Assembly: GCF_964194025.1 (NCBI RefSeq)
Contig: NC_134476.1
Coordinates: 19,034,001-19,098,000, forward strand
Reading direction: 5' to 3'
Origin: Convolutriloba macropyga
Taxonomy: Eukaryota
DNA: 64,000 bases
Shown: positions 31,208 through 56,200 of the stretch, piece after piece
Position numbering within the stretch: the first letter of the stretch is position 1
Layout of the letters: the number at the start of each line of letters is the position of its first letter
Made by a program: the position numbers and the translations under genes
Notes under the pieces: model-generated
The model's database searches: none
What the model was told of the DNA's origin: nothing
The model's input: only the letters and a program-made list of their open reading frames with translations

Positions 31208-34200
31208 TCATCTATAAGGAAATTGTCTACTTCTGGAGTCAAAGGATCTGCGATTATCGTTGGAACTGAAACCTCCGTACCGACCAACCGACTCATTCGC
31301 CCAATCACGCGCCATCACTCTCTTTGACGGGTGATCCGAATCTTCGTCCATCAATTCAACGGCACTGCGTTTTGCCGCACGTGAATCACCTCCGTATTCC
31401 AGACGCATTCGGTCCGTTTCCGACAGGATCTCATTACCACTTCCCCCGCTGGGTGGTAAAGGGGGTCGGGTATCTACAGGTAGTATCGGAGGTGGCCTTG
31501 CAACTCCCGAATCGTAAGCAGAATCAAGAGGTTTGTAAAGTTGCTGCATGTAGTCATCATTGCGTCGTGGACCAGGGGAGCCCTGTTGGGTTTTGAATCG
31601 AGATAGTGCAGAATTGTGGCTCGCGCCAGTTCCTCGGTTCCAACTGGAGGAGCTCTCATGTGACTGTCGTCTACTGTGGTCGGGATACCTGAAATACTAT
31701 CGCAAATAAGATACAACGATACAACAACATACTTGGTCCCCAATTTCTTTGCAAAAACTCATTTTTTTGTTATTCAACCAATCACTTCGAAATCTGATCT
31801 CGCGACCATTTTCACATTCCTTATGTGTCTCATCAGAAAGTGTCTTGAAATAGCCTTACCTGTCAGCGGGCGCAGATCCATTTCGGTTCCTGTCATTTGT
31901 CTCTTCTCGGAAGTAAGGAAAACTTGAGTTCTGAGCTTCATTATACAACCCTCTATCTGCGGGCCTCTGAGAGCCCGAAGATGCATTATAGTGCCCGTTC
32001 TCCCTCCTGAACGCTTTTTCCTGAGTTTGCCTGGGTGGCGACGCTGGTCGTCTATTGATTATTGCAGGTGCTGCACTGGAACCATTAGCACCCTCCGAGT
32101 CTGGAGGTCGGTTCCGAATAATGATTGCAACCAACATGTCATGTCTAGGACCAGATAAAGTAACATTGAATCCAAAATCAGAAGGAAAATCTTCACTGGC
32201 CGACAGGGACATTATGTAAATTTCTTTAATGCTTGCTGGATTTTGAGCGGTAGCCCCCAACATACGTTTAGTTTTGAGGGTATCAAAATACTCGACATAA
32301 AACTTTTTTCCGCGACTATCACCGGGAACTTCGATTTCCACGACAGCCATTCCCAACTTCCTTCTCGCGTGAATTTTCTTCAAATAATCAAAAGCCTGTG
32401 TCCTTTCAAGTTTACCCTTGGTAATGATTTGAGTGTTCATGTCTGCTCTCAGGTTTCTTACTGACCCTTGAATCGGCAGCATAGATACGCGACATTGCCT
32501 ATCGTCGGCAACCACCAGGTTTCCTTCCCAGATCACCCCAGCTGGTTCCATTGGAGGTTGAGATATAACAGGTACCAACGCTGGTGGGGGCGGTGATGGA
32601 GCTTGTGATACACGCTTTAAAGGTGGCGGAGCATCACCAGGCGATGAGCCCAAAAGACCAGAGCTACTGGGCTCTGAGTTCAGGATAGAGTCACGAGGTG
32701 GGGAAGCGTTCAGACCTAATGGTGCGGAAGGTTCAGATATCAAAGGTTCGGAGGCAGGTTGTGAATCGTCAACTTCATTCAGAAGTCCAGCACCTCCACT
32801 GACCTTTCCAGTTCCAAATAAACGATCGTCTTCAACAACCTCTTCATTCAATTCATGCAAAACTTGCACTCGATTTCGTGCTATTTCGTGTCGCGATCTT
32901 TCATACTCGTCACGTCTACTGCGTAATTGCTTGCTAACATCATCTTCGTAATCGTCAAGTTTGCACTGATAACATGTCTCGTCGTACTGCTTTCCACTAA
33001 ACTGGTGCTCTCTATGAGCTACACGTTGCGCATCCGTCACTGGGTTCAAACAGAAATAGCATACAGAGGGAGCGCACCTTTTAAGCTTGTGATTATAGTA
33101 AAGGGTTTTCTCTTGTGCTTTGATTCTAAGTTGTTCTCTTTCCTGAGCATCCAAAATTGAGCTTTCATTTCGGCGACTTCTGCAAATCCTACAATTGCCA
33201 CTATATTGATGACCCTTTCCATGTTCCGCCGTCGTATCCGCAGCCAGACTGGACAAAATATCACTGGATTGTTTGTACCTCTGAGATGGAATCGCCGTGG
33301 GAATATCAGGGAAAAGGTCGCTTTCTGGTATAAAATCAATAAACTGGCTTGTTCCCACCTTTTTGAAGTCATCTTCTGACATCAAAACCAGATGTCTGGT
33401 TGTCAGACGTCCACTAGATATCCATTCAAAAAGGGTTTTGTTAGCATCCAGGTATTGAACAACTCGATTGAAACAGTCTGTATACTTGCCCGTGATATCC
33501 TTGCCGTTATAGTGGAACAAATTTAGCTCAAAATCGTTTGTAATTCTGTTCAATTGGGTACCACTAAGTGGTTTGCCAGAGGTCATATTAACATTTGAGT
33601 TCATCTCCATCAGTTTCCGATTCATTTGTCTCTTGTGTTTACTCCTTGCATCATTCAGAACTTCAGCGGCATTTTTCTCTGGCATTTTAATTTCGTAAGT
33701 AGGGTTTTGTCTCAACCATTTGAATAGTTCTCCAATATTTGGCGCACGTCGTCCTTCCACCGAGATATTGGCCCGTTTGTCGACCAAAGTAATGACAATT
33801 TTGCTCCAATTTTCTGAGTTGCTTTGGTTTGCGCTACCCTCTCCGTTCTCAGCATTCGGAGGCTTGTAGCCGACAGCATCGTAGAATTTTTTAACGTGTC
33901 TCTTGATACAAGGCTTTGAACAAAAGTTGCTTTCACCTGAAATGAACAGTCTTTTAGCCTAGTGCAAGAAAGGAAAGGAAAGGCAAAACTGTAAAATCAG
34001 TTTTAACGTTCGAAACAGCTGGCTAAAACGTCTTACAGGAAAGACCCAAAAATGCTATATAATTCGCTAAGTACCAGAACTATTTCCGTTCACAATTCTG
34101 CATTTCTTACTATATATTTTAATTTTTTTCTTCATGGGCTCCATGGTTAACAATTAAATTCTGAAAACCTTGGCGTACTTCTGATTTATGAATTGAATTA

Positions 34201-37200
34201 ACCAGCAGCAGTAAAATCAAAAACCGATCGAAAATCTCTTTAGTAAATTGGTACCAATTTGAGAGCGCAATTAAGATAATAATTTAAATCACGCAAAGTG
34301 AAGCTATCAAGCGCAAAAAAGGCTCAATAAGTGAAATACAATAACCTGAAGAACAAAATCTATCCATTTGCATATACCCATTAACAAGAACAAAAGCTTT
34401 GACAAGTCTTTTTTTTGCCCCTAAAGATCGAAAAACTCGAAAAAAGGCAAGAAATTTTCACAATTATAGAAAAAAACAATTTGATGAAAATTGTCAAAAT
34501 TCGTGATATAAATATGTTCAAGATCAATCCTTTGTCTCTTTAATCTGTCCGGTGACCCATCATCAAGCCATTAAAAATATCACGGGCCATCAAGGAGCGC
34601 TAAACTCAACAAAAATGACACATTTTGAAAACATCTTAAAAAAATTGCACATTTTTCTTAGAGGGTTGATGTAAATTTCGTGATATCAATATCTTGAAAA
34701 CGATTTATTATCTCCTGAAACTATCCTGTAATCCATGGTAAAGCCCTTAAAAGTTTCATTAAAACCGAAAATTCGAAAAACTCAAAAAAACGACAAAATC
34801 TTCAATAAACTTTTATTGAATGGAAAAATCAAAATCATTTTGGTTGTTTAAGTTCACACAAACAAAACACAAAGCCCAAAAACAGACATTAAAAAATTAA
34901 TTAAGGCTTGCAAACAAACTTCATCAACAATAAAATACGAATCAAACAAAAATGATTTAAAAAAACGTGGAAAATTTGACCATTTAGGGCTCAAAAATTA
35001 CTAAGAACTTTCCAGTTTGAATTAGAAGTTTCCAGCAGTTTCGCCATTCTTAGCATTTCAAGTAGGATGGACAAAACCTAATAAGATCACAAAACTGACA
35101 GGGCTGACAACCAACGATAAAAAAATTAAGAAATCTTTATTAGGAATCTTCTGAGCAGTGGGAATGAATGGTCTCAAAAATTAAGAAATCGTCATAAGTA
35201 ATCTTCTAAGCATTGGGACAGCATAAGGCAAATAGCATTTTTGGAAACTGAATTGACTTGACGAATTTTAGGCTATGAGAAAACAGAGAACTTTTCGTTG
35301 AGGCGTCACAGCACTTCAAAACAAAAACTTCACTATTGGAGATAATTTTCAAATTAAATTCTTTTGCAAAAATTAACCTTATCAGAAATAAAAACAACAT
35401 TATCAAGTAAATAGATAGAGTAAATCTCGAAGGCAAAAAATCGATTAAACAAAATCTAGTCCCAAGAAAATCCACATAACTCAAATATCAGTCATAAATA
35501 CCAGTCAAAAACAATAGAAATTCCAAAAATCTTAGAGCTGCAACAGATTGTATGTATTGTTTTCCAAAACCAAGGAAAATGAAGGAAAACTATAAAATCT
35601 TTAAATATTTTAAAGAACTCATTCAGGCAGAACAAAGAAAAGTGAGGTTAATAACAAAAACTCGGCAAAGGTATTTGCGAGAAACAAAGGGATGGCAAGT
35701 ACTAGTATGTGAAGGTCATGCACACATAGTAAAAAAGCAACAAAAATGCAGCTTATATACTTTGATTACAAAAAAGTGCTCAAAGATACAGAAATATTAA
35801 CATAACCGACAACGTCGGGCGAATTGCACTCAAACGACCGGCGAGCGGTTGGCTTGGTCAGTAGCTAGCCACGGTGGGGGGGGGGGGGGTGCACCGGGGG
35901 CTGATGGGGGGCAGCACTGGGTTGGGGGGGGGGGGCAACAGCGCGGTGGGGCGGGGGGGTCAACAAGGGGGGGGTATCTCAACCTCTAAGAACCGCCCTT
36001 CACACCATAAGTATAAGTATCAGTCTCCAAAACAGTGAGCTGAAACAGACCTGAAAGGCTCTAAGAGCACTTAATGCCCGCTGGGCGCTACCTGTTTATC
36101 CCGTTTTTGAGGACGAAAAGTCAAAAGCGTCAGACGAAAAATTGGTCAAGCGAAAAATCGCTTAAAAAAGACCGACAGGACTAATATAATTGCTACACAC
36201 TTCGTTTGAGAGCAATTAAAAAGAAAATAATAGAAATCAATAAAAGACTAAGAAAGCCCTGCCCAACTTGCAGCATTATTAACTCTCAAAAAAAACTGTG
36301 GTGACAATTTCAGAGAGTTGCATATTAATGCAGCGTGGAGCAATACAATATTTCATCAACAAGTAAAAAACGAGCCTATTGGACAAAAAGACGGTCAATT
36401 ACATGCACTATTTTCACAAAAACACTTTTCAAAGTAAAAGAAATTGGTTCCACAACGCAGTTCATGAACAAGAACTTTAGCACGATCAAGCACGAATCGC
36501 TCTCGGACGACAGGCGGGGCAAATTAATTTAGAGTAGGTGTTGCTATGCAGATTTTCATGGTTACAAAAATGCGGTCCCCAGAAGGGTACAAATCCAAAA
36601 CAGTCAAGGATAACAGTATGGCATCTTAACTATTAAGCCACATCGCCTTTGCATGTTTGACGATAAATCCGGCTTTACATCAGCGACAAACGTTCTTCGG
36701 AATAAAAACAACTGATATCACAAAAAATCTGAGGTCAAGGGTGGTAAAGTCACTTGAGGGAAATTTTTTTAAACATTAGCGCAAAAACGGCCAAGCAAAA
36801 CATACGCAGCAGATTGCCGGAAAATAGCCGCCGTTGATTCCAATAAGCATGATTGGGATTGAAAGAATAGAAGATATTGAAAAAAAAAGAGTTTTGTACA
36901 AAAACATTTTTTAAGTCCGATTTATTTTGATGGCATTTCGTAGTTGAACATACTTCTGTTTCTTAGAGAGATGCTACAGGGGCTGCTATCGTAACCAATA
37001 AGCATTAGAGATGTTAACTAAGACTTAAAGGAACGACGTTCAAATAGCGGGCATCTAAAATTGGGCTATATGGGTTTATCCCGTTTCTATTCCTGACTTT
37101 CAATTTTTTATTCTGACTCTGTTCATTTTGAATTGCTTTGCTGAGCAACTGATGTTCAAATTCACTTTTAGCAGAATGAGAGAAGAGAGAAACTAGCCTA

Positions 37201-40200
37201 GAGAAGTCAAAAAGATTTCACGCAAAATGCTGAGAAAGCGGCAAAATGGTAAAGCGAAAAAAAGTTCGACGAAGTAAAAAAAAAAGTAGGAGCGCTATAA
37301 TAGCCGGCTGAGAAGATGAGGGCGGCTATTAAAAATTTTGCATTAAAAAGACTTGCACGTTTACAGTAATTGCCTTCTTCGTTCGAGAGCAATTAAACGC
37401 CAAATGCCACAGAAAGCAAATGCAAAGTAACCATGGAAGTAACTTTTAAAATTTTATAAATTATCAATTACCGTCAAGCGAATTGATTTCAATCGACTTA
37501 TCGCTTTCCAAAAACTTACGTTGGTCTGGCTATCTTGAGGCAAGGGGGCGAAATGTGAGGGGGTCCACGCCTACCACCCATGCCTCCGCTTTAGAACTTA
37601 GTTAACCTTTTGGCTGTAGTCTTATAGACCAGTAAATTTCTAACGGAACTTCGCCGCAAGTTCATGCCCTTGGGCTTTATCAGTTTATCCCAGTGTCAAC
37701 CTCTCCACGTCATAAGTATAAGTCGCCAAAAGAGTTTCTGTGAACCGCATACTTGGAGACTAGTGAGCTGAAAGGCTCTAAGAGCACTTAATGCCCGCTG
37801 GGCGCTACCTGTTTATCCCATTTTCGAGGACGAAAAGTCAGATAGGTCAGACAAAAAATCGGTCAAGCGAAAAATCGCATTAAAAAAGACCGACAAACTA
37901 ATATAATTGCTACAAACTTCGTTTGAGAGCAATTAAACACCATAATATTTCGAGTCGTAAAAGGGCATAAAACTTCAATATGGCCAAATCAAATGCAACA
38001 ACCCTTACTTGCGGACAAGTAAAAGTTCATATGCTACAAGCTTTAAAAAGCACAAAACTTTTGCAATGAACGCCGTTTCCGCAGTGTTAAAATTTGATCT
38101 CTCTGAGAGATCCCCCCGTGAGAGCAATGGAAATTTAACTTATTACACAACACTTACCACCACCGACTGTGACTGGTTTTCCACACGCAAGCACAATGCA
38201 GCGTCTTCCGCCAGAACTCGGTTTCCCACTGCTCGACTGTTTACTGCTCTTAGACTTGCTTTGCTTATGAATTGGAGACTGCTGGTTGTCCGTTTCCTCA
38301 TCCGCCTGAACAACTCGTGATTGAGGCTTGGACGGTGATAAAGCCGGTTTTTCCTCTTTCTTCTTCTTTTTCTTGGGTTTTTTGAACAGATCTTCATCTA
38401 GCAATCGAAGTTTTGCATCATCTTCAGTTTCAGTTGGAGTTATAGCAGAAGGCTTAGAACTAGACTTGTCACTAGGTTTCGAATCTTTAGACGCTGACTT
38501 TGTGTCACTTGAAGATTTCTGCGCAGCAGGTGGTGGTTTTTCATCATCTGAAGAACTAACAGGTCGAGCCTTTTTCTTCAGCTTGCTGACAGGTGGCGGA
38601 GAGGGAGACCGCTCTTTTTTCTTGAGCTTTTTCTTTTTCGTCTTCGGAGGCGGAGAACTTGGTTCAACGTACTCATTCTCAGAAGAGCTAACTTTCCGTT
38701 CTTTCGGAGGTTTCACGGGCTTGGCCGGTTCTTCCTCCTCCTCCTCTTCATAAGCTTCTACAGACTCTTGAGGTTCTGGAGGGTCCAAAAATTTAACCGG
38801 TGGGGGTGCAGTTGACACTTCTAAACCTGCCAATGCCTCCATTGAAACTTCAGGTTTGTTCTCTAATGGACTAACCTCATTAGATCCACTCTGCTGGCTA
38901 TCCTCCTCTTTCTTGACTGAGCTCTCAATTTTTACAGGCTTGGACTCGGCTGACACCGCGGGTTTTTCTACCTTTATATCTGGTTCCTGTTTTGAAGTTT
39001 TCTCTGAAGTCAGAGGAAGTTTGAATGACTTTCCTTCAAAAATTGACTTCTTTTCTGTTTCCCATGGCGACTTAGATAGTAGTTTTTCAGGAGGCTTTAG
39101 AAAATCTTTTTTGCTCTTAATCTTAGGTGCTGTTTCTTTTTCGTCATCTGAAGAGTCAGAATATTGTGGTTTCTTAGGTTTAGAACTGATGAGTAAAGAT
39201 GGCGGCTTTGAAGGACTTTTAGTTTTGTGCTTCTCCGCAGCCGTACGACTAACTTTCAATGACTGTTCTTTAATCTTTTTCAGCTCTAGAGAACCCAATT
39301 TAGCGCCTTTCTTGCACCTTTCAACAACATCAGGCGGCAAACGAGGACAAAAAATGATCAAATTCATGCTCAATTTATGATGGTTCTTATAAAGCGTGTT
39401 CAATTTTGCTTTCTGTTGTTTGGTCATGGTTGACTTCTTGGTCAGTACCTTTTTCCTACCACTTGAGTCACTTCCAGATGAAGATCCACTGGAAGAACCA
39501 GAACTTGAAGAGTCGCTACTTGAATCAGAACTTGAGTCATCTGAACTTGAATTGTCATGTGCCTTTCGTTTTGGACTTGGAGGAACAAGCATTGGTTTGG
39601 CTTTCACCGTCCCGAGTGCTTCATCTTCTGAGGATTCAGCACCGCTGTCATTAGCTTTTGACATTTTGGATTCCTCTCGTTTTACTGTTGAATTCTGATC
39701 ATCATCGGTGGATTTACCATAATCTACTTTTGCATCAATGTTTTCTTTTTTTATGTCCAACTTTTCATCTGCTGAACTTTCTTTTCCGTCTGACAATTTT
39801 TCACTTTCACTATTAGCTGGTTCTACTTTAGCGTCCTTGTCAGCCTCTCTTTTATTAGATTCTTTTTCATCTTCATCAACAAGCATTGAATCCTCAGCTC
39901 TTTCACGAACATTGTTGGAACTTTTGGCTTCAATTACTGACTCATCCTGAGAAACATCCGATTTAACTTCTTGACTACCATTTGTTGACCAAACTAATTC
40001 ACAAGCACCCTCTGGTTCCTTTTTGGAAACTTCGTTTTCCTCCATTTTAACTTCAGATTTTGTATCAGAAGACATTTTATCATCTACCGCTATTGCAGTC
40101 GCGGTCGAGTCGTTTCCGACATCCGCGTCCATGGGCTCTGTAGTTGTGACTTCCGGTTCCGAACATTCCTCGCCTGAACTCTCGTCAAATGATGATGATG

Positions 40201-40855
40201 TATTAGTTTGAGGCGTATTAATCGCAACATCAGCGTCAAAAACCGGCATTAAAACTGAGGTCTTTTTGGGAGAAACTTTTGAAGTTTCACTTTTTCCAAC
40301 TGATGCGAGGTCACTGGAATTTGAAAACACAGCTGGAATTTGGTCAAACTTGGGCGCCAGGGCAGAACTAAACGGTTTCTTTTCTGTTTTTATTGCGGAT
40401 GAGAGGTTGCTGCTTGAAGGTGTTGTTGTACTATCAAATACCGGTGTTAATGCTGATTTATTTGGCTTAGGAGTTGGTACACTGCTTTCTGATTTGGTCG
40501 TTGTTTCTGAAGTTTCATCTTTGATGCTGGAACCTGCTTCTGAATTTTGCATCTCGTTATCACCCATGTATTCGCGCAATTTTTGTTGTTTTTCCTGTTC
40601 CTTAACTTGGTTCTCTTTATCCTTACAAAACAAGCATTTGTACTTTTCACGGTCTTCCATCATTTTCTGAATCCTGACTTTGCTAATTCCTACACAGTCT
40701 GAATGATACCAGGTATCACAGAAATCACAACACAACATCAATTTTGAGTTCTGAGGTTGTTTGCAGAAACACCATTTTCCATTGTGATCTTCACTATCCA
40801 TATTCATTGAATCAGTGTCCGTTCCATAGCTGACCCGGAGTATTGATTCCGACAT
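31208..40855 (-). CDS. DIDO1: DIDO1/PHF3/PPS-family chromatin/transcription regulator (PHD, BRK, TFIIS central domain, SPOC; 3 coding exons, ~1751 aa)
   Basis: Exons 38158-40855, 31860-33936 and 31208-31688 are joined by GT-AG introns with matching phases (1 and 2). Motifs: N-terminal PHD (WCFCKQPQNSKLMLCCDFCDTWYHSDCVG...KYKCLFC); CIVLACGKP...NFCSKPCIKRH, formed only across the splice junction; BRK-like GRRAPNIGELFKWLRQNPTYEI; TFIIS_M-like ...LFEWISSGRLTTRHLVLMSEDDF; DTTAEHGKGHQYSGNCRIC; SPOC (IWEGNL...DMLVAIIIR). Orthology among DIDO1, PHF3 and PPS cannot be resolved here. Confidence 0.9.
35797..36220 (-). mobile_element. HINE-like element (same family as 18125-18465) in DIDO1 intron 1, carrying poly-G tracts
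   Basis: Hairpin ccgac-aac-gtcgg (35806-35818); subTIRs aattgcactcaaacg (35822-35836) and cgtttgagagcaatt (36203-36217); shared ggtcaagcgaaaaat...aattgcta block. Confidence 0.75.
36485..37397 (-). mobile_element. Longer diverged HINE-like copy containing a tRNA-like segment and a module of the 22-31 kb array
   Basis: Degenerate subTIR aatcgctctcggacg followed by acaggcg, as in the 18 kb copy; the other end is cgttcgagagcaatt (37380-37394). Internal 36810-37340 is similar to 28070-28500 and 30170-30530. Confidence 0.65.
37695..37937 (-). mobile_element. Truncated HINE-like copy
   Basis: Near-identical to 36035-36220 (aaaggctctaagagcacttaatgcccgctgggcgctacctgtttatccc...cgtttgagagcaattaaa). 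The hairpin end is missing. Confidence 0.7.
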
Positions 40856-41103
40856 ATTCAATTTAATAGAAGTGATAAATTTAGGTTTACAGATACGAAA
40901 AACGCTTCATAAATTTGATCTGAAATAAACATCAGAACTGCGAAAGATAATCTCGATCAGTTACAATGGCATTTATGAGCATGAGCAAAAACCAGGTGAA
41001 AAAAATATTACTAAAGGACTCAGAGCATCCAAGAGTTCAATTATAACGTATATTGAACAAAACTTCCAATCAGTGGAAAAAAAAATTTTTAACCAAATAG
41101 TTT

Positions 41104-44100
41104 TTAAATATCAACTAAATGTTTCGTTCCCAACTTTCGAAGCATTTTTGTGATTTTCGCATCATCCATATTCTCAGCAGTCAAAATTGTGTTGGCGACA
41201 AGCATCAGAGTTCCGTGGGATGAGGCGGCAATATATATGCGACCGTTGATACCAACACAGATTTCAAATTTGTACATTTCAGACAAACCATTCAGTAATG
41301 GAAACGTATCCGACAGCATTCTGAAACAGCTCATGGCTTTAAAATAAACACTTTCAGAATATCTAGCGCATCAACACTTTTTGGAAGGGGAACATACTTC
41401 TGTTCTTTTTTAATAACGCCAATGTGATAAAAATTAATCAGTGTGTTTGCAAAAATTGTTTGCAGTCGTAGTATTGAGACTTTCGAAGTTGCCGCTTCTG
41501 GGGATTTGATTCCCTTTATGGCAATGACTTAAGTATTCAATTATTTTTCCAATGGAGCAGCTTAACCATTGTTATACCTTCTACAAAAATTGCAAGACGT
41601 GTGAATGACAGTGGATGGCTGCGTGGAAGACAAAGGACCAAGACCATTAGCTTTCCCTTTACCATCTATGCACACAACTTCGTACTCGTATGAAGCGTCG
41701 GATGAAATTAATCGGCAAAAAACGACGTCCCCTATCTGAAACAGAGATCAGAGGAAAAACCACAATTCAAACCACTGCTTATTGTCATAATTTGTCTCCC
41801 TTATAAACCTCTGCTTATTTGTATTCCCTGATCTCGGTATATCTAACCTGTGTTGGTTTGTTTTCAGGTATTTTACTTGCTGTTTGTTTAGAATTTGCCA
41901 TAGTAGCATGATTCTCTAGTTTCAGCCGACTTATATTATCGTTCCAACCCCACTTAGTGGATGGGGGAATGGGGAGCTACATGCTCAAATGTTTTTTTCT
42001 AATCAGTCAATTTTAGCTGATCGATTTATTTGATATAGAAAGACACGAGTGATATCATTAGAAAATTCATCGAACTTAGAATTGTAAATTCTTGTAAAAA
42101 TTTTTGTAAGATTCGGCATTTTACAATAATCGATTAATTGTAATCATTTTACACTGATTAAATGTCTATACAATTCATTTTCGGTTTTCAGAGAATTTTT
42201 CACGTACGGCAATTTGACTGCTGTTTCCTTTTTTCTCTTGATTTTCTTCAAATGCCTTGAAAGCTGATACATGCAATCTAATGGTGAATAGAGGATATTG
42301 TGCAAATCGATCAAGGGAGAGCAAACAAATTTTGTGGTTTTGACTATATATTTCAATGAAACAAATTGATTTTTCAGTTACTCTCGTTTGTTGCGTAATT
42401 TTGTTTTTCTGTCATTAAAGTTTCATTTAAGAAGTCCCACTGTTGATTTAAAAAATGAACGAACCTAAATAACTTTTTCTTTGAACAGCAGGTGTCAGGA
42501 CAAATTACCCAATGCTATAATGCCCAATGCCATTATACCCAATGCCAATAAACCCAATGCCATTATACCCATCGTACTTTGATATTTTCATTCAATAATC
42601 CGAAAACAAATTAGCAGTCGTTATTACCCGTATATTTTAACATAATTAATGGCCATGACCATGCCTCACCGGCCCGTGAGACTTGATATGGAATTATCAC
42701 AACCGAACATGTGATTAAATTACACGATTGTTAAATCATACGTGTAACAGCTATTTTCTGCTAATAAGTACTCGGATTATGGAAAGAAAATATCAATGTG
42801 AAATGCGTATAATGGCATTGGGTAATTTGGCATTGGGTATAATGGCATTGGGTAAATTGTCATGTAATCAAACACCATATTAGTTAATGATTTTGACCCA
42901 AAGGTCCGTTAAAAATTTTTTAAAAGTGTTTTACCTGTATTCTTCCCTTTGAGTTCTGATCATTAACTAAGTTAACTAATGAGATGACTATTGGTCTCTC
43001 AAAGGAGGCATCAGTGCACATTTATCGCAATTTTCATCTTTTCTGGTTTTTATGGCCCTGATACCTTTCGTGCACCTCGTGAATTTTTGGGTTTTGCCTC
43101 TATTTGGATACTTCTCATTCAGCCTCATCACTGACAGCTATCATTGGGCTTTTTAATGCAGCATTATTTTAAAAAAATTAAGGCATAAATTGTTTTCAGT
43201 CAATAATTTATGATTTTGGTTGAATTTTGTATTGTCTGAGGTCAATAGTTCTTGCCTTTTTTACTTTGAAAATGTTTGTTCTTGAAATATTGATTTTCGT
43301 TATAATATGAGCGTGTGTTAATTTTAAATTTGACGCCACTAATTTTCAACGAAGTTTTTGAATATCTTAATGTCCGTTTTCTGCTTTTCCGCAAAATTAT
43401 TGATGTTGGTGATGAATAGTTTAAATAATTTCAACAGGTGATCCTATGGATAAATTAAGCGTCTGAGTTCTAACACCCTGCTTCTCAATTTCTCTTCTTA
43501 CTGCGCATGCATTTTTTGGCCACTCGATTGATAAATTTTTCGGAGCATCATAATTCAGAATGCAAAATCTAAACAACTGAAATAAGGCTGCACCAAGGTG
43601 ATTATCATAAGGCTTTATTTCTTGAAGGATCTCGATGTTTGACGTTTGGTTTCAACATTTAATTAAGATAAACTCAGAATTTTATTTTTTTCTGTTTGAC
43701 AAGTTTAGGCGTTTACTTGACCAAATCGTTGTTTTATTTGATCAAGAAATTGCACTAATATTGATTTTTTTCAGCTAAAAGTGGAATGTGCAAATCAATT
43801 CTATATATGTTCATTCTAGCGAAAAACAACAAGATTGATATTAACCTCAAAGGTTTATATGTCTGTCTTACTTCAAGAATACATCAATTTTTAAGCCCCT
43901 TATTTTTTCATCTACCCCCTATTATTTTGACTTTTTTAATCATTACGTGCGAACGCACTATACTGAGCCCCTTTTAGCAACATACATTAGAAAACTAATC
44001 GAGCTTAGAAATGTAAATTCTTGTAAAAATTTTAGTTAAGATTCGGCATTTTACAATAATAGAGTGATATTAATCATTTTACACTGATTAACTGTCTATA

Positions 44101-47100
44101 CGATTCATTTTCGGTTTTCAGAGAATTTTTCACGTACGGCAATTTGACTGCTGTTTTCTTTTTTCTCTTGATTTTGTTCAAACACTTTGAAAGCTGATAC
44201 ATGCAATCTAATGGTGAATAGAGGATATTGTGCAAATCGATCAAGGGAGAGCAAACAAATTTTGTGGTTTTGACTATATGTTTCAATGAAACAAATTGAT
44301 TTTTCGGTTACACTCGTTTGTTGCGTGATTTCGTTTTTCTGTCATTAAAGAAGTCCCACTGACGATTTAAAAAATGAATGAACCTAAATAACTTTTTCTT
44401 TGAACAGCAGGTGTCAGGACAAATTACCCAATGCTATAATGCCCAATGCCATTATACCCAATGCCAATAAACCCAATGCCATTATACCAAATGTACTTTG
44501 ATATTTTCGTTCAATAATCCGAAAACAAATTAGCAGTCGTTATTACTCGTATATTTTAACATAATTAATGGCCATGACCATGCCTCACCGGCCCGTGAGA
44601 CTTGATATGGAATTATCACAACCGAACATGTGATTAAATTACACGATTGTTAAATCATACGTGTAACAGCTATTTTCTGCTAATAAGTACTCGGATTATG
44701 GAAAGAAAATATCAATGTGAAATGCGTATAATGGCATTGGGTAATTTGGCATTGGGTATAATGGCATTGGGTAAATTGTCATGTAATCAAACACCATATT
44801 AGTTAATGATTTTGACCCAAAGGTCCGTTAAAAATTGTTTAAAAGAGTTTTACCTGTATTCTTCCCTTTGAGTTCTGATCATTAACTAAGTTAACTAATG
44901 AGAGGACTATTGGTCTCTCAAAGGAGGCATCAGTGCGCATTTATCGCAATTTTCATCTTTTCTGGTTTTTATGGCCCTGATACCTTTCGTGCACCTCGTG
45001 AATTTTTGGGTTTTGCCTCTATTTGGATACTTCTCATTCAGCCTCATCACTGACAGCTATCATTCCGCTTCTTAATGCAGCATTATTTTAAAAAAATTAA
45101 GGCATATATTGTTTTCAGTCAATAATTTATGATTTTGGTTGAATTTTGTATTGTCTGAGGTCAATAGTTCTTGCCTTTTTTACTTTGAAAATGTTTGTTC
45201 TTGAAATATTGATTTTCGTTATAATATGAGCGTGTGTTAATTTTAAATTTGACGCCACTAATTTTCAACGAAGTTTTTGAATATCTTAATGTCCGTTTTC
45301 TGCTTTTCCGCAAAATTATTGATGTTGGTGATGAATAGTTTAAATAATTTCAACAGGTGATCCTATGGATAAATTAAGCGTCTGAGTTCTAACACCCTGC
45401 TTCTCAATTTCTCTTCTTACTGCGCATGCATTTTTTGGCCACTCGATAAATTTTTCGGAGCATCATAATTCAGAATGCAAAATCTAAACAACTGAAATAA
45501 GGCTGCACCGAGGTGATTATCATAAAGTTTTATTTCTTGAAGGATCTCGATGTTTGACGTTTGGTTTCAACATTTAATTAAGATAAACTCAGAATTTTAT
45601 TTTTTTCTGTTTGACAAGTTTAGGCGTTTACTTGACCAAATCGTTGTTTTACTTGATCAAGAAATTGCACTAATATTGATTTTTTTCAGCTAATAGTGGA
45701 ATGTGCAAATCAATTCTATATATGTTCATTCAAGCGAAAAACAACAAGATTGATATTAACCTCAAAGGTTTATATGTCTGTCTTACTTCAAGAATACATC
45801 AATTTTTAAGCCCCTTATTTTTTCATCTACCCCCTATTATTTTGACTTTTTTAATCATTACGTGCGAACGCACTATACTGAGCCCCTTTTAGCAACATAC
45901 ATTAGAAAACTCATCGAGCTTAGAAATGTAAATTCTTGTAAAAATTTTAGTTAAGATTCGGCATTTTACAGTAATAGATTAATTGTAATCACTTTACACT
46001 GATTAACTGTCTATACGATTCATTTTCGGTTTTCAGAGAATTTTTCACGTACGGCAATTTGACTGCTGTTTTCTTTTTTCTCTTGATTTTGTTCAAATAC
46101 TTTGAAAGCTGATACATGCAATCTAATGGTGAATAGAGGATATTGTGCAAATCGATCAAGGGAGAGCAAACAAATTTTGTGGTTTTGACTATGTTTCAAT
46201 GAAACAAATTGATTTTTCGGTTACACTCGTTTGTTGCGTGATTTTGTTTTTCTGTCATTAAAGAAGTCCCACTGACGATTTAAAAAATGAATGAACCTAA
46301 ATAACTTTTTCTTTGAACAGCAGGTGTCAGGACAAATTACTCATTGCCATAATGGCCAATGCAATTATACCCAATGCCAATAAACCCAATGCCATTATAC
46401 CCAATGTACTTTGATATTTTCGTTCAATAATCCGAAAACAAATTAGCAGTCGTTATTACCCGTATGTTTTAACATAATTAATGGCCATGGCCATGCCTCA
46501 CAGGCCCGTGAGACTTGATATGGAATTATCACAACCGAACATGGGATTAACATACACGATTGTTAAATCATACGTGTAACAGCTATTTTCTGCTAATTAG
46601 TACTCGGATTATGGAACGAAAATATCAATGTGAATTGGGTATAATGGCATTGGGTAAAGTGTCATGTAACAGAACAGCATATTAGTTAATGATTTTGACC
46701 CAAAGGTCCGGTAAACATTTTGACGAAATTTTAGAGTTTTACCTGTATTCTTCCCTTTGATCATTAACTAAGGTAACTAATAATAGGACTATTGGTCTCC
46801 AAAGGAGGCATCAGTGCACCTTTATCTCAATTTTCTTTTCTGGTTTTTATGGCTCTGATACCTTTCGTTCACCTCGTGAATTTTTGGGTTTTGCCTCTAT
46901 TTGGATACTTCTCATTCAGCCTCATCACTGACAGCTATCATTGGGCTTTTTAATGCAGCATTATTTAAAAAAATTAAGGCATATATTGTTTTCAGTCAAT
47001 AATCTATGATTTTGGTTGAATTTTGTATTGTCTGAGGTCAATAGTTCTTGCCTTTTTTTACTTTGAAATTGTTTGTTGTTGAAATATTGATTTTCGTTAT

Positions 47101-48332
47101 AATACGAGCGTGTGTTATTTTTAACATTGACGCCACTAATTTTCAACTAAGTTTTTGAGTTTCTTAAAATGTCCGTTTTCTGCTTTTCCGCAAAATTATT
47201 GATGTTGGTAATAAATAATTTCAACAGGTGATTTTATGGATAAATTAAGCGTCGGAGTTCTAAGGTTTATGTCTGTCTTAATTCGAGAATACATCAATTT
47301 TAAAGCCCCTTATTTTTTCATCTACCCTCTATTATTTTGACTTTAATCATAACGTGCGAACGCACTATACTGAGCCCTTTTTAGCAACATACAGCTACAG
47401 AGTATGATAACGCTCAGCTCCGGCTGGGGAAGGTTACCTTCAAAGTTTCAATTCCCATAATTACTCTTGTTTAATTCTTTTATACTCGATGACATCACTT
47501 ATATTTCAGAGTTACATCGGTTAGCACGTTCAACTCAATTGTTTGGAAAAAAATCACTTACAAAAAAGGCGGTAAACTGAGCATTAGCATCGAATCTTAC
47601 CTTCAAATCTGGATAACTCCTTTTTGTAGCACCTTCGAAGCTCAAAACGTTCAGCATTGCAGATTCCCCGCATCCGATGTCAATTTTGAACGCATCTACC
47701 ATTTTGCCGAGAACGATACCGACTATTTCATCTCCCTTCTGTGCAGCATACTAAAAAACCATTCAAACTTGGTAAATCCATTATTCTTGATAACGGTACC
47801 TATTTCCCCTAATCATACAAACGAATGCCGCCATCAACATGTATTTTGCAAGATCACAAAATTCGGTGCAAATTCAGTAAACGTTATATTAACGGAGTAT
47901 TTTATGAATAAAAAATAAAGTTAAATCAGGCAACAGTTCAAAAAGTAAAATAAGGTTTACAACATGATAATTGTCGTTTCTATTGGAATCTTTTACAGGA
48001 AGGTTTATAAGTGAAGCAGAGACATCTTTCGTTAGAAAGTCGATCAGTGGAGCAACAATAAAAAAAATTAAATTTTGAGACATGAGTAAATCTGCCCACC
48101 CTAGAAAGACTTATTATGACACAAAATTATTGTTCACTGCTGATAAACAGAAAAAAGGCCAAATACCTGCCTTTCTCTGCGCGTAGTCAACCCAAAGCAC
48201 ATTTTTCGTCTTTTTGCAAATTCCACTATTATGACACCTCATTTCGCCGTTTACGAAAGCAAACCCGGGTCCAGCAACATCTCCCTCATCGTAGCTGACA
48301 CATTCTCCAGCCAAAACTGTTTCGTTGATCAT
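41104..48332 (-). CDS. EXOSC3: Exosome complex component RRP40 (4 coding exons, 228 aa)
   Basis: Exons 48171-48332, 47601-47750, 41578-41735 and 41104-41320 join in frame (687 nt). The translation has RRP40 hallmarks: GPG, WVDYAQRK|YAAQKGDEIVGIV, FKIDIG, LSFEGATKRSYPDLK|IGDVVFCR, EVVCID-GKANGLG and the KH-domain FEICVGINGRIYI. Intron 1 needs a GC donor; introns 2 and 3 are GT-AG. Confidence 0.95.
42491..42869. mobile_element. Mutator/Foldback-like MITE, copy 1
   Basis: The left arm ggtgtcaggacaaattaccc + (cccaatgccattata)n is inverted at the right as (tataatggcattggg)n + taaattgtcatgtaatc. Confidence 0.75.
44410..44788. mobile_element. Mutator/Foldback-like MITE, copy 2
   Basis: Near-identical to 42491-42869 and at the same position in the second 1.92-kb unit. 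Confidence 0.75.
46323..46670. mobile_element. Mutator/Foldback-like MITE, copy 3, with recognisable TSD
   Basis: Same arms, with the right arm shorter. It is flanked by tgaacagca and agaacagca (8 of 9 match). Confidence 0.75.
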
Positions 48333-49599
48333 TTTGATCGATAATCTGAAAAATAACTGATCACGAGGGAGTGAAATATCTTAGTTTCCCTGAGTGAAGG
48401 TATTAACCTAACTCATTACAATGCTCAAGCATTCTCGTTTTTGCTTGACGATGAAATATGTTTGAAAGTAAGATGCATAATAAATTTTCTTAAAAGGACG
48501 CTCTATCAAGGGCAGTGATCCAAACTTTTTTAAACACCGAGAGCCTAAAACCGAGTTTTCCTCCGATCCAGCGGTGGATTCTCATCAACTTTCATTGGAC
48601 CTATATTGGTTAACCGATACTTTTTTGTAAATTCAAAGTTTTCAACCAAAGATACTTTACTATTACTGACCGAATCTAATCGCAAAAGGAGTAAACAATA
48701 AAAAAAACTCCATGCTGCTTCAAATGCTTTGATTACACTATATGTAATCAAACCATTTGATTTTATTTCTCATTTAAGCCACTTACATGTTAAAACGAAT
48801 TAGGTATAGTCCACCAGCAACAAATTGAGTGAAAAAAATTTAACCAATAGATATTGAGCACGAGAATTTGATGCTTTCATTAGTTCGTAACCCACAAAAA
48901 CATTATACAAGGCTCCAGCAAAATCATAAAATATCCGGAAGCCTGCCTAGAATACTCTTCTATGCTGCTGTTTATCAAAGCCAAAACGATCTTCCCGAAA
49001 AACGTCAACTTATATTTCAAAAAACATGAATTGAACATAAAGATGCTGACAAAACAGAAAACATCAAGTTTCAATGCAATTGTAACAAAAACAGCAGCCA
49101 TTTCAGGAATAGAAAGCACTATACCCGGAATTTTCATAAAATTCGGAATATAAAATGAATTGATTTTAGTGTAATAAGTTTAAATAAAATGTTGTAAATG
49201 TGATTTTAACTGTAAATAATTTCAAAAATTCGATGTTATTTTAACTCATTTTTTAGAATTATAGTCAAAGACAAGTTTATATACTTTGTAAATGATTTCA
49301 TTTAATTTTTAAACCTGACGATGAACGCAATGTTCGAAAACGTTCGTTTTAGTTAATCAATATAAGTTTTAATTGACAATTACTTCTCTGCAAAAACAGC
49401 AACGTTTCGCAAACATTAGAATTGGATAAAGTCATACAATCAGTGCCCTTAACTGCGCTTTGTATAATTATATTGATTCTTGTGCCTTAAAGCTGTTTAT
49501 TGTTTCACCTCATTTAGGAATGTTCTTGAACCTATCCTGTTCTGTAAAGACACCGTGCACTTCTTCTTCCATGGAAACCACCCGTTGCACCGTTTCTCG

Positions 49600-49899: not shown

Positions 49900-51213
49900 G
49901 GCTAAAAAGCGCAAAAAAATTTTCTGAATACGGCTGGTTATTCCTGCATAGTATGTCACTTAAACATGCATTGGAACTTAGCAAAAAAGCTCAAAAAAGC
50001 GTAAATTATCCCAAAATTCCCCCAAAAACAAAGAACAATTACTCCCGAGGAAACTTCGATACCTGAAAACATGCTTAAAATGACGCACGTGAGGAGTAAA
50101 AATCAAAAATGTGAAAAATAAATAAAAGGGCTCTTGGTTCTGGGAGATATTGATCCCAGAACAAGAGTAATCTGTTAGAAACTTTCGTTTCTAACAGATA
50201 TTAAATTTTTTTTTTGAAATAAAAGTGTTAAAAAAAACTTCTACACTTGCCCACATGTCTGGTTGTTACCGCAAAGTATGTCATGTAAACAAGGATTGCT
50301 CAGGCACAACGTATTCACACTTCTGCCTCAAACACTTAGCCAAAAAAGCTTTAAAAAAAGCAAATTATCCCGAAATTCCCCCAAAAACAAACAGAAAACC
50401 TCCCCTGGAAACCTCGAAACCTGTAAACATGCTTAAATTGACGCACGTGAGGAGTTAAAAAACAGAATTGTCAAAAAAATAAAAGGGCTCTTGGCTCTGG
50501 GAGATATTACTCCCAGAACCAAGAGTAGTCTGTTAGAAACTTTCGTTTCTAACAGACATTCAAATTTTTTTTCAAGTAAAACTGCAAAAAAACTTTTTGA
50601 ACACGGCTGGTTGTTCCTGCATAGTATGTCACTGAAACATGCATTGCTCAGGTACAACACATTCACACTTCTGCATCAAACACTTAGCAAAAAAAGCTTT
50701 AAAAAAAGCAAATTATCCCGAAATTTCCCCAAAAACAAACAAAAAACCTCCCCTGGAAACTTCGAAACCTGTAAACATGCTTAAATTGACGCACGTGAGG
50801 AGTTAAAAAACAGAAATGTCAAAAAAATAAAAGGGCTCTTGGCTCTGGGAGATATTACTCCCAGAACCAAGAGTAGTCTGTTAGAAACTTTCGTTTCTAA
50901 CAGACATTCAAATTTTTTTTCAAGTAAAACTGCAAAAAAACTTTTTGAACACGGCTGGTTGTTCCTGCATAGTATGTCACTGAAACATGCATTGCTCAGG
51001 TACAACACATTCACACTTCTGCATCAAACACTTAGCAAAAAAAAGCTTTAAAAAAAGCAAATTATCCCGAAATTTCCCCAAAAACAAACAAAAAACCTCC
51101 CCTGGAAACTTCGAAACCTGTAACAGATATTCAATTTTTTTTCAAGTAAAACTGCAAAAAAACCTTTTGAACACGGCTGGCTATTCCTGCATAGTATGTC
51201 ACTGAAACATGCA
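49900..51213 (+). repeat. ~355-bp satellite, diverged left edge of the array
   Basis: About 4 units of the same monomer as 53220-64000. The first units are the most diverged and the last has an internal deletion of about 125 bp. Confidence 0.95.
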
Positions 51214-52630
51214 TAGCTATAGCAAAAATTCTTTTTGTTTTAGACTCTACATACACTGGAGATACTCCATATCGAGTTTGGTTCCATTTGGACAACTCCT
51301 TGACCCGATCAAAAAGCCATATTTTTAAAATTATTTATTTGAAATAATTGCAAATTTCCGTATGAAAAGCTAACTTTTTTTCTAGGCAAGCAATAGCATA
51401 AATTCTTTTTGTTTTACCTTCTAGGTACACATGGGATACTCCATGCCGAGTTCGGTTTGATTTGAACAACTCCTTGAACCGATCAAAAAGACCTATTTTT
51501 AAAATTATAATCGCAAAATTATTCGAAATAATAGCAAATTTCCGTATGAAAAACTAACTTTTTCCCAGGCAATCTATAGCAAAAATTCTTTTTGTTTTAG
51601 ACTCTACATACACTGGAGATACTCCATATCGAGTTTGGTTCCATTTGGACAACTCCTTGACCCGATAAAAAAGCCATATTTTTAAAATTATTTATTTGAA
51701 ATAATTGCAAATTTCCGTATGAAAAACTAACTTTTTTCCTAGGCAAGCTATAGCATAAATTCTTTTTGTTTTACACTCTAGGTACACATGGGATACTCCA
51801 TGCCGAGTTTGGTTTGATTTGAACAACTCCTTGACCCGATCAAAAAGACCTATTTTTAAAATTATAATCGCAAAATTATTCGAAATAATAGCAAATTTCC
51901 GTATGAAAAACTAACTATTTTCCTAGGCAATCTATAGCAAAAATTCTTTTTGTTTTAGAGTCTAAATACACTGGAGATACTCCATACCGAGTTTGGTTCC
52001 ATTTGTACAACTCCTTGACCCGATCAAAAAGCCATATTTTGAAAATTATTTATTTGAAATAATTGCAAATTTCCGTATGAAAAACTAACTTTTTTCTCAG
52101 GCAAGCTATAGCAAAAATTCTTTTTGTTTTAGACTCTACATACACTGGAGATACTCCATACCGAGTTTGGTTCCGTTTGGACAACTCCTTGACCCGATCA
52201 AAAAGCCATATTTTTAAAATTATTTATTTGAAATAATTGCAAATTTCCGTATGAAAAACTAACTTTTTTCCTAGGCAAGCTATAGCAAAAATTCTTTCTG
52301 TTTTACACTCTAGATACACATGTGATACTCCATTGGCCGCACTGAGCAGACTTTCTCCAGACCATTGGCCAGACCGAACAGAACCATGGCCAGGCCGTTG
52401 TCCAGACCAACGGCCAGACCGTTGTTCAGACCGTGGGCCAGACCAAACAGACCTCTTAAGAGAGCCCAAAAAACCGACCGCACGTAAACTACGTCCCCAA
52501 CATGAGGTGCACAAAATCCCAGCGGGGGGGAACCGACTAACCGGCGTCTCAACGGGGCAGGGGGGGGTGGTGCACCTCATGCGGGCCCGAGGCCCTCACC
52601 TTAGAATAATAGTATTATATAAATATAAAA
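51214..52630 (+). mobile_element. Helentron/HINE-like insertion with a ~178-bp core tandem repeat, CAGAC-rich short repeats and a 3' IR/hairpin
   Basis: About 6.3 copies of a 174/183-bp unit (51214-52332; gatactccatatcgagtttggttcc), then ccagacc-rich repeats (52355-52455), a 12-bp IR catgaggtgcac/gtgcacctcatg (52501-52512 and 52570-52581), the hairpin gggcc-cga-ggccc (52583-52595) and an AT-rich tail. The tandem repeat is directly visible; the Helentron assignment rests on architecture only. Confidence 0.6.
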
Positions 52631-53219
52631 AAAAACAATTTCACATAATGATTTACCATTTTGTGACACGAACTCTGTAACTGGAAGGAGGAGAACGTAC
52701 TGGCGGGATTGAGGGAGGCCAAAGGTCTGTCTTACTGTAATCCCCGTAAAGTCACAGGGTCAGTTCTCCTGTTTCAACAGGTCAAAATGGTGGTATCTTT
52801 AATAGTCAATATTTCAAAACTGGCCGAACTAAAAACAAACAAACTGGGACCAACAACAGTACTCCTTAAGATACGCGTTATGTCAAAAAATCAACCAAAT
52901 CGGTCCATTCTACGAGGAGATATTGCAAAATTGAGGTACCGTACCAATCTCGTCAGAAACGAGGAGAGGTGACTTGCAGACCAAAAATTGACCATCTAAA
53001 CTACGGAAAACGCCCTAGAAAACATATATGGGGAGAATCCTCATTATCAGTGGAGTCTAAAGAACTAAAACTTGGGGCTAAATTCGTCTTTTTTGTTGGT
53101 CTAACATGGACATACACGAAATGTACCGGACACGAATTGGTCAAAATGGGGGTATGTGTCCTGGCCAATTTCTCGAAAACGGCTGAAAAAAACAAAACGC
53201 CATTTACAGGGATCCAAGT

Positions 53220-56200
53220 AAGAAACTTTCGTTTCTAACAGACATTCATTTTTTTTTTCAAGTAAAACTGCAAAAAAACTTTTTGAACACGGCTGGTTGT
53301 TCCTGCATAGTATGTCACTGAAACATGCATTGCTCAGGTACAACACATTCACACTTCTGCATCAAACACTTAGCAAAAAAAGCTTTAAAAAAAGCAAATT
53401 ATCCCGAAATTTCCCCAAAAACAAACAAAAAACCTCCCCTGGAAACTTCGAAACCTGTAACAGATATTCAATTTTTTTTCAAGTAAAACTGCAAAAAAAC
53501 CTTTTGAACACGGCTGGCTATTCCTGCATAGTATGTCACTGAAACATGCATTGCTCAGGTACAACACATTTACACTTCTGCATCAAACACTTATAAAAAA
53601 GAATTAAAAAAGAGAAAATTATCCCGAAATTCCCCCAAAAACAAACAAAAAAACCTCCCCTGAAAAGATTGAAACATAAAAACATGCTTAAATTGACGCA
53701 CGTGAGGAGTAAAAAACAAAAATGTTAAAAAAAATAAAAGGGCTCTTGGCTCTGGGAGATATTACTCCCAGAACCAAGAGTAATCTGTTAGAAACTTTCG
53801 TTTCTAACAGATATTAAAATTTTTTTTTTTGAAATAAAAGTGTTACAAAAAACTTCTACACTTGCCCACATGTCTGGTTATTACCACATAGTATGTCATG
53901 TAAACATGCATTGCTCAGGCCGAACGTATTCACACTTCTGCCTCAAACACTTAGCCAAAAAAGCTTAAAAACAAGCAAATTATCCCGAAATTCCCCCAAA
54001 AACAAACGAAAAATCCTCCCCTGGAAACTTCGAAACCCGAAAACATGCTTAAAATGACGCACGTGAGGAGTAGAAAACAGAAATGTCGAAAAAAATAAAA
54101 GGGCTCTTGGCTCTGGAAGATATTACTCCCAGAACCAAGAGTAATCTGTTAGAAACTTTCGTTTCTAACAGATATTCAATTTTTTTTCAAGTAAAACTGC
54201 AAAAAAAACCTTTTGAACACGGCTGGCTATTCCTGCATAGTATGTCACTGAAACATGCATTGCTCAGGTACAACACATTTACACTTCTGCATCAAACACT
54301 TATAAAAAAGAATTAAAAAAGAGAAAATTATCCCGAAATTCCCCCAAAAACAAACAAAAAAACCTCCCCTGAAAACTTCGAAACATAAAAACATGCTTAA
54401 ATTGACGCACGTGAGGAGTAAAAAACAAAAATGTTAAAAAAAAATAAAAGGGCTCTTGGCTCTGGGAGATATTACTCCCAGAACCAAGAGTAATCTGTTA
54501 GAAACTTTCGTTTCTAACAGATATTAAAATTTTTGTTTTGAAATAAAAGTGTTACAAAAAACTTCTACACTTGCCCACATGTCTGGTTATTACCACATAG
54601 TATGTCATGTAAACATGCATTGCTCAGGCCGAACGTATTCACACTTCTGCCTCAAACACTTAGCCAAAAAAGCTTAAAAACAAGCAAATTATCCCGAAAT
54701 TCCCCCAAAAACAAACGAAAAATCCTCCCCTGGAAACTTCGAAACCCGAAAACATGCTTAAAATGACGCACGTGAGGAGTAGAAAACAGAAATGTCAAAA
54801 AAAATAAAAGGGCTCTTGGCTCTGGAAGATATTACTCCCAGAACCAAGAGTAATCTGTTAGAAACTTTCGTTTCTAACAGATATTCAATTTTTTTTCAAG
54901 TAAAACTGCAAAAAAAACCTTTTGAACACGGCTGGCTATTCCTGCATAGTATGTCACTGAAACATTCATTGCTCAGGTACAACACATTTACACTTCTGCA
55001 TCAAACACTTATAAAAAAGAATTAAAAAAAAAGAAAATTATCCCGAAATTCCCCCAAAAACAAACAAAAAAACCTCCCCTGGAAACTTTGAAACCTGAAA
55101 ACATGCTTAAACTGACGCACGTGAGGAGTAAAAAACAAAAATGTCAAAAAAAATAAAAGGGCTCTTGGCTCTGGGAGATATTACTCCCAGAACCAAGAGT
55201 AATCTGTTAGAAACTTTCGTTTCTAACAGATATTCAATTTTTTTTCAAGTAAAACTGCAAAAAAAACCTTTTGAACACGGCTGGCTATTCCTGCATAGTA
55301 TGTCACTGAAACATTCATTGCTCAGGTACAACACATTTACACTTCTGCATCAAACACTTATAAAAAAGAATTAAAAAAAAAAGAAAATTATCCCGAAATT
55401 CCCCCAAAAACAAACAAAAAAACCTCCCCTGGAAACTTTGAAACCTGAAAACATGCTTAAACTGACGCACGTGAGGAGTAAAAAACAAAAATGTCAAAAA
55501 AAAATAAAAGGGCTCTTGGCTCTGGGAGATATTACTCCCAGAACCAAGAGTAATCTGTTAGAAACTTTCGTTTCTAACAGATATTAAAATTTTTTTTTGA
55601 AATAAAAGTGTTAAAAAAACTTCTACACTTGCCCACATGTCTGGTTATTACCTCATAGTATGACATGTAAACATGCATTGCTCAGGCACAACGTATTCAC
55701 ACTTCTGCCTCAAACACTTATAAAAAAGTATAAAAAAAAAAGAAATTTATCCCGAAATTCCCACAAAAACAAACAAAAAAACCTCCCCTGGAAACTTTGA
55801 AACCTGAAAACATGCTTAAATTGACGCACGTGAGGAGTATAAAACAAAAATGTCAAAAAAAAATAAAAGGGCTCTTGGCTCTGGGAGATATTACTCCCAG
55901 AACCAAGAGTAATCTGTTAGAAACTTTCGTTTCTAACAGATATTAAAATTTTTCTTTGAAATAAAAGTGTTAAAAAAAACTTCTACACTTGCCCACATGT
56001 CTGGTTATTACCACATAGTATGACATGTAAACTTGCATTGCTCAGGCACAACGTATTCACACTTCTGCCTCAAACACTTATAAAAAAGAATTAAAAAAAA
56101 AAAGAAAATTATCGCGAAATTCCCCCAAAAACAAACAAAAAAACCTCCCCTGGAAACTTTGAAACCTGAAAACATGCTTAAATTGACGCACGTGAGGAGT

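Follow-up and report, generated by a model that had tools for sequence, protein, structure and literature searches.

Background

Operons that are resolved by spliced-leader (SL) trans-splicing are known from nematodes, tunicates, flatworms, chaetognaths, rotifers and a few other groups. In the SL2-resolved operons of the Caenorhabditis elegans type, described by Blumenthal and colleagues, about 100 nt lie between the poly(A) site of one gene and the trans-splice site of the next, and the intercistronic region is U-rich. Here we describe a gene pair of similar appearance in the acoel Convolutriloba macropyga, EXOSC3 followed by a DIDO1/PHF3-like gene, and we propose that it is a two-gene operon of the SL type. 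We find this reading plausible and give it a probability of about one half; co-transcription of the two genes is its conjectural part. The window, by which we mean the whole stretch of DNA that was analysed, is 64,000 nt long (contig NC_134476.1, positions 19,034,001 to 19,098,000, RefSeq assembly GCF_964194025.1). All positions below are window positions unless they refer to another contig, and both genes lie on the minus strand, so that their coordinates fall in the direction of transcription.

Among acoels, SL trans-splicing has been published for Symsagittifera roscoffensis, where it affects 30.2% of the genes (PMC9911081). An operational criterion for operons is available from work on a chaetognath, namely that neighbours are less than 250 bp apart and that a member gene carries the SL (PMC12460157). 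Our search of the literature returned no paper on operons in acoels or in Xenacoelomorpha, SL trans-splicing in acoels being already known.

The gene pair and its spacer

In C. macropyga the two genes stand in tandem on the minus strand, with the DIDO1/PHF3-like gene downstream. The stop codon of EXOSC3 (TAA, 41106-41104) is separated from the downstream ATG (40855-40853) by exactly 248 nt (41103-40856), of which 44% are T, 27% A, 14% G and 15% C. AATAAA was not found in this spacer. Its near variants there are AATATA (41054-41049), CATAAA (40977-40972) and ATTAAA (40867-40862), the last of them only within the downstream 5' untranslated region (UTR). The spacer also carries the acceptor tgtttatttcAG, the AG of which occupies 40921-40920, 64 nt 5' of the downstream ATG. 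Upstream of this acceptor the spacer has just two GT sites, gtaata (about 41011) and gtaact (about 40963), and the bases directly 5' of them are TA and TT, never AG. An earlier note on this DNA had drawn attention to the co-orientation of the genes and their distance of 248 bp, to a U-rich spacer with AATATA and no AATAAA, to the acceptor and to the weakness of the two possible donors. All of this proved accurate, and the acceptor is indeed used in RNA, as the end of a contig described below demonstrates.

RNA at the pair

Four public runs of one study cover the stretch. Three are DNA-like, with contigs that run across introns, and the fourth (X4) is spliced RNA, which fits the poly(A) RNA-seq specimen of the C. 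macropyga genome note; our RNA evidence thus consists of the assembled contigs of one poly(A)-selected run. One of them (contig 31, 800 nt) is the EXOSC3 mRNA. Its 3' end lies at 41025, which is 79 nt beyond the stop codon and 24-29 nt after AATATA (41049-41054, minus strand), the hexamer that probably serves as a variant poly(A) signal of EXOSC3. Another (contig 30, 628 nt) represents the downstream mRNA at its 5' end; it is aligned to 40310-40921 and then continues for 19 letters that have no genomic match upstream. No joint from contig 30 to any place in 37000-42100 was reported. The mature RNA therefore leaves the genome exactly at the acceptor AG and without a paired cis donor, as is expected of SL trans-splicing. 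The earlier note had regarded this acceptor as unpaired and used in trans, and had suggested looking in RNA for a leader joined at 40919; the spacer holds no partner donor and the contig departs precisely there, which supports the claim, with the SL as the probable source of the 19 letters.

Between the two RNA ends lies a gap of 103 nt (40922-41024, minus strand), U-rich (46% T), which may be an intercistronic region or an outron. Contigs 30 and 31 account for the whole of the X4 depth bins (251.5 x 79/171 = 116.2 and 111 x 160/171 = 103.9), so there is no RNA contig of X4 on 40922-41024. This bears on the idea that the two genes yield a single bicistronic mature mRNA, or an EXOSC3-PHD fusion, left unprocessed between the genes. 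The common strand and the short spacer would suit such a read-through product, but the RNA comes as separate contigs, with EXOSC3 ending at 41025, the downstream message starting at the acceptor and nothing over the gap, and we regard the idea as scarcely credible.

Probable addition of the leader at 40919

In our opinion it is highly probable that the DIDO1/PHF3-like mRNA is trans-spliced to the SL at 40919. The alignment of contig 30 extends two letters onto the acceptor AG, so that the last two foreign letters must be AG, as they are in the SL (...ATAG). An equal extension by two letters is seen at the joint of EXOSC3 exons 2 and 3, exon 2 ending in AG. The overhang of contig 30 is accordingly 19 + 2 = 21 nt, equal to that of the EXOSC3 contig, for the EXOSC3 exon model counted from its own acceptor comprises 779 nt, as against 800 nt in the contig. 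Further, the SL is present on EXOSC3 mRNA contigs of a related acoel, in full in L046 (31 nt) and for 23 nt in L056, and is attached at the homologous acceptor, 9 nt from the ATG; the orthologous PHD gene in another acoel assembly (L015) has ttattttcag as a strong acceptor, 84 nt upstream of its ATG. Taken together, the AG-ending foreign letters, the equal overhangs, the SL on the EXOSC3 orthologues and the acceptor of the orthologous PHD gene favour the SL as the sequence joined at 40919.

We infer that EXOSC3 itself is leader-spliced as well, at 48345. Its leader-type acceptor (ttatttttcAG, AG at 48346-48347, minus strand) lies 13 nt before the ATG, and both the 21-nt excess of the contig and the SL on the orthologous mRNAs L046 and L056 point to it. 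That the two contigs stop at the same 21 nt may be due to a loss of extreme 5' ends in the library or to shared k-mers; among 30 sampled SL gene loci no variation was found at the point where both stop.

The 19 letters might instead come from ordinary cis-splicing to a unique short exon that lies farther upstream and belongs to the 5' UTR of the DIDO1/PHF3-like gene. Pieces of 19 nt are too short to be placed as a joint, and these letters are known by their length, not by their sequence, which leaves some room for such an exon. However, at a depth of 111 a unique upstream exon should let the contig reach the transcript start, whereas it stops after 21 nt. Moreover, the EXOSC3 contig has exactly this overhang too, and the SL is demonstrably present on orthologues of EXOSC3; AG, the ending of the SL, also closes the foreign sequence, while TA and TT stand before the GT sites of the spacer. 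No SL-like sequence was found within the 64-kb window, so the leader cannot derive from a nearby cis exon. We therefore consider a cis-spliced exon very improbable.

The spliced leader in the genome

The 31-nt SL of S. roscoffensis (GCCTAATTGTTGTGATAAACTTATTAAATAG) has more than 2,600 occurrences in the C. macropyga genome versus 0 in the reversed control, and its 3' part followed by a GT donor is present in 1,275 copies, again versus 0 in the control. The copies with a GT read ...AAATAG/GTAAGT and have a conserved stem-loop downstream. Given the SL and these GT-bearing SL RNA gene copies in the genome, the trans-splicing machinery is present in C. macropyga. Most of the SL RNA genes are found in tandem arrays on the window's own chromosome (C9, 23.1-23.7 Mb), about 4 Mb from the window, with a spacing of about 1.06-1.8 kb and in both orientations (L027-L045).

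Several observations concern the leader copies themselves. All eight exact genomic leader copies that were read (L001-L008) are followed by mRNA-like sequence and not by a GT donor, and they resemble retrocopies of leader-spliced mRNAs. Eighteen leader copies across the genome have the identical 20 nt after the leader (AGATGAGCCAGCGAGGCATG) and diverge beyond. In the metatranscriptome contig L046 (positions 1-46) the leader is preceded by an adaptor-like ACATGGGGG and then by CTTTTA, and most genomic SL genes have TTTA before GCCTAATTG. The leader is perhaps longer on its 5' side for these reasons, and its true start may lie about 4-6 nt upstream of the published 5' end.

Operon or independent genes

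In the proposed operon, RNA polymerase II (Pol II) from the EXOSC3 promoter would read through the EXOSC3 poly(A) site. The EXOSC3 RNA would be ended near 41025, about 25 nt after AATATA, and the 103-nt U-rich gap would most simply be the intercistronic region. The acceptor AG at 40921-40920 would receive the 31-nt SL in trans, so that the downstream mRNA would begin at 40919; this trans-splicing would both cap and free the downstream message, and two separate mature mRNAs would result. The layout fits an operon: both genes are on the same strand, the stop codon and the ATG are 248 nt apart, and the acceptor (40921) follows the contig end (41025) at a distance of 103 nt. Measured as in the chaetognath, the EXOSC3/DIDO1-like pair lies within the 250-bp limit and very probably bears the SL. 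The spacer, in addition, stayed at 248 nt while intron 2 of EXOSC3 swelled to 5.9 kb. The operon suggested in the earlier note has gained a leader-type acceptor, a lineage that possesses the SL and a spacing of about 103 nt, but no RNA across both genes was found in X4.

Several points weigh against the operon, and most of them speak for the principal alternative, that the two genes are independent. The DIDO1/PHF3-like gene would then be transcribed from a compact promoter of its own, situated in the spacer or within the 3' part of EXOSC3, SL trans-splicing would do no more than trim a short outron, and the closeness of the genes would result from a recent rearrangement. About 30% of S. roscoffensis genes are SL trans-spliced, and no operons have been reported there (PMC9911081). 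None of the X4 contigs bridges both genes, a weak point since contigs of one poly(A) run rarely retain precursors. A compact promoter could indeed lie in the spacer, in the last exon of EXOSC3 or in an intron, and CATAAA (40977-40972), 51-56 nt upstream of the acceptor, is TATA-like. However, with a start after CATAAA the outron would measure about 25 nt, which is short for a branch point and a pyrimidine tract, and only 103 nt are available from the EXOSC3 RNA end to the acceptor. Other SL lineages generally treat such close same-strand pairs with a leader on the downstream gene as operons (PMC12460157, and the C. elegans background).

The remaining points come from related acoels. In the relative whose EXOSC3 is 80% identical, the mRNA contig L056 passes from the 3' UTR into a convergent ion-channel-like open reading frame (ORF). 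The assembly ERZ26859043 has EXOSC3 (L047) on one contig and the PHD gene (L015) on another; the 9 kb that follow EXOSC3 contain no PHD gene, and EXOSC3 is missing from the 10 kb upstream of the PHD gene. The acceptor of this orthologous PHD gene is of the same type although EXOSC3 is not upstream of it, so its leader splicing is independent of EXOSC3 as a neighbour. These observations again suit independent genes. On the other side, a comparison of the spacer with the region upstream of the L015 acceptor revealed no similarity, so no promoter appears to have travelled with the gene. Between the 5' UTRs of the window gene and L015 the similarity is limited to a weak match of 24 nt, a score that 10 of 500 shuffles attained. 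Weighing all this, we consider independence of the two genes quite possible, if somewhat doubtful.

With a different arrangement in two related acoels, the pairing appears to be either young or unconstrained, and a selected coupling of the two genes is unsupported. The earlier note had recommended checking whether the adjacency is conserved, and the outcome was negative in both of these relatives (that of L056 and ERZ26859043). It had further imagined a functional coupling of an RNA exosome subunit with a Pol II elongation/SPOC factor; the pair not being adjacent in the two relatives, a link between the exosome and the Pol II C-terminal domain (CTD) or SPOC finds no support.

Returning to the operon, one may ask how it could have come about. 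A tentative possibility, which we would put forward with some reserve, is a newly born operon in Xenacoelomorpha: the DIDO1/PHF3-like gene, a lone and already leader-spliced gene in other acoels, would have moved in the Convolutriloba lineage to a place 103 nt behind the EXOSC3 poly(A) site and would now depend on EXOSC3 read-through. If this is true, the pair shows an early stage of an operon, which SL trans-splicing would allow to arise merely by two genes coming to lie side by side.

Other comparisons touch the same neighbourhood. In L056 the segment 720-1309 is the 3' end of the convergent ion-channel-like gene (weak Ion_trans match), and the two transcripts seemingly overlap tail to tail. 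In a third assembly, ERZ21818094, EXOSC3 is followed at 122 nt by an ORF on the same strand, known by its position and strand alone. Two further matches to EXOSC3 exons (P0006 and P0009, 41-43% identity) have no PHD gene among their called neighbours and are uninformative on acoel synteny. A likeness of the L046 3' UTR to the window spacer in global alignment was dismissed as chance, 939 of 1,000 shuffles having scored as high.

The two genes and their surroundings

The DIDO1/PHF3-like gene has an open frame of 906 aa from the ATG at 40855-40853, which includes a PHD finger. The coding part of exon 1 (38158-40855, minus strand) holds this finger at residues 29-77 and ends at the donor GTAAGT (38157-38152); the loose end of X4 contig 25 joins 33936. 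The next large exon (31856-33936, minus strand) is defined by Pfam matches, this splice joint and collinear tblastx matches to the orthologue L015, and it encodes SPOC and a sub-threshold TFIIS_M. The Pfam scores are 29.8 bits for PHD and 50.4 bits for SPOC, both above the cut-off, and 23.4 bits for TFIIS_M, below its cut-off of 29.2. The order PHD, TFIIS central domain, SPOC is that of DIDO1/PHF3/PPS proteins, TFIIS_M remaining below threshold, and a distant match in Seison has the same PHD/TFIIS_M/SPOC architecture. On the strength of SPOC and the sub-threshold TFIIS_M in the second large exon we assign the predicted protein to the DIDO1/PHF3/PPS family. The gene with this combination of PHD, TFIIS_M and SPOC is single-copy in the genome.

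The 5' UTR of this gene (40856-40919, minus strand) is 64 nt long, as given by the sequence and RNA contig 30, and contains an upstream ORF (uORF) of seven codons (ATG 40910-40908, TAA 40889-40887). It stands directly behind the acceptor AG at 40921-40920 and encodes MKRFSYL (40887-40910 with the stop). In the orthologue L015 a uORF is likewise found directly behind the acceptor, there encoding MEIKSTNNP (9923-9952 with the stop). Intron 1 of the DIDO1-like gene contains a very high-copy repeat at 37000-37340 and 37684-38025 with many rearranged joints; its summed contig depths are 10^5-10^6 in the DNA runs and more than 1,000 in the RNA run. The 182-aa N-terminus of the PHD gene found no match in a protein search, and JGI metagenome contigs scanned for an orthologue of this gene gave only distant proteins (35-47% identity).

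EXOSC3 is modelled with four exons, all on the minus strand. Exon 1 (48171-48345, ATG 48332-48330) rests on the reading frame and on alignment to the orthologue cDNA L046. It ends at what is apparently a GC donor (AAG/gcaggt, 48169-48170); splicing at a GT that lies four bases beyond would disrupt the reading frame, and the GC boundary agrees with the orthologue cDNA. Exon 2 (47601-47750), with part of the S1 domain, corresponds to the loose end of X4 contig 31 behind 41737 and to a tblastx match to L047. Exon 3 (41578-41735) is covered by contig 31, in which the joint 41320/41578 omits 257 nt bounded by GT..AG on the minus strand and which runs on into exon 2. The last exon (41025-41320) has a KH_6 match in Pfam, the stop codon at 41106-41104 and a 3' UTR of 79 nt, up to the end of contig 31. 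The model yields 228 aa and is collinear with a full-length orthologue of 228 aa and 80% identity (P0003, RRP40_S1 and KH_6). N-terminal, S1 and KH domains in a protein of this size agree with EXOSC3/Rrp40, for which about 230-275 aa are usual, and the gene is single-copy in the C. macropyga genome. Both gene identities given in the earlier note, EXOSC3 and DIDO1/PPS, hold: the former through KH_6 and the full-length orthologue, the latter through the PHD finger in the big ORF together with SPOC and the sub-threshold TFIIS_M in the exon 33936-31856. A protein search with the 71-aa last exon of EXOSC3 returned no candidates.

Intron 2 of EXOSC3 measures 5.9 kb, and within it 42144-47200 holds about three tandem copies of a unit of about 1.9 kb with internal 15/30-nt repeats (TACCCAATGCCATAA). 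In the related acoel (L047) the corresponding EXOSC3 introns are about 90 and 590 nt long, the counterpart of the 5.9-kb intron being the one of about 90 nt. The ORFs upstream of EXOSC3 (48.5-49.9 kb) have no Pfam match, so there is no sign of a further upstream member of the operon. Satellite arrays occupy 49976-64000 (units of 348, 357 and 360 nt) and begin on the upstream side of EXOSC3, no more than about 1.6 kb from its leader acceptor; the array of 360-nt units has more than 29 copies and extends past the end of the window. At gathering thresholds, Rfam gave no match in the window.

Comparison with known systems

Taken alone, this is a single candidate pair, and its co-transcription is what we propose rather than what the contigs record. 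In our opinion it nevertheless deserves attention. Xenacoelomorpha is of central importance to the debate about how the genomes of early bilaterians were organised, and with relatives that lack the adjacency the pair could show how operons arise. It also supplies coordinates for a test that are precise to a few bases: the RNA end at 41025, the acceptor at 40921-40920 and the 103-nt gap between them.

The likeness to operons of the C. elegans type is considerable: the genes are on the same strand, the spacing is about 100 nt, the gap is U-rich, the members are unrelated genes of the housekeeping type, and the first gene seems to be leader-spliced too. The differences are that the polycistronic precursor is a conjecture here, and that the pair is not kept in relatives, whereas nematode operons are mostly conserved. 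We know of no specialised leader of the SL2 type in acoels.

The SL system of S. roscoffensis (PMC9911081) is alike in the identical leader, in SL RNA genes with a GT donor and in an acceptor a few tens of nt before the ATG. The paper, however, makes no mention of operons, whereas Convolutriloba, another genus, has what is very probably a leader-spliced gene 103 nt behind the end of the EXOSC3 RNA. As for the operons of the chaetognath Paraspadella gotoi (PMC12460157), of tunicates and of flatworms, those are backed by genome-wide RNA, ATAC or long-read data, in contrast to one pair described from contigs here. Yet they resemble our case in that a single leader family serves monocistronic and operonic genes alike.

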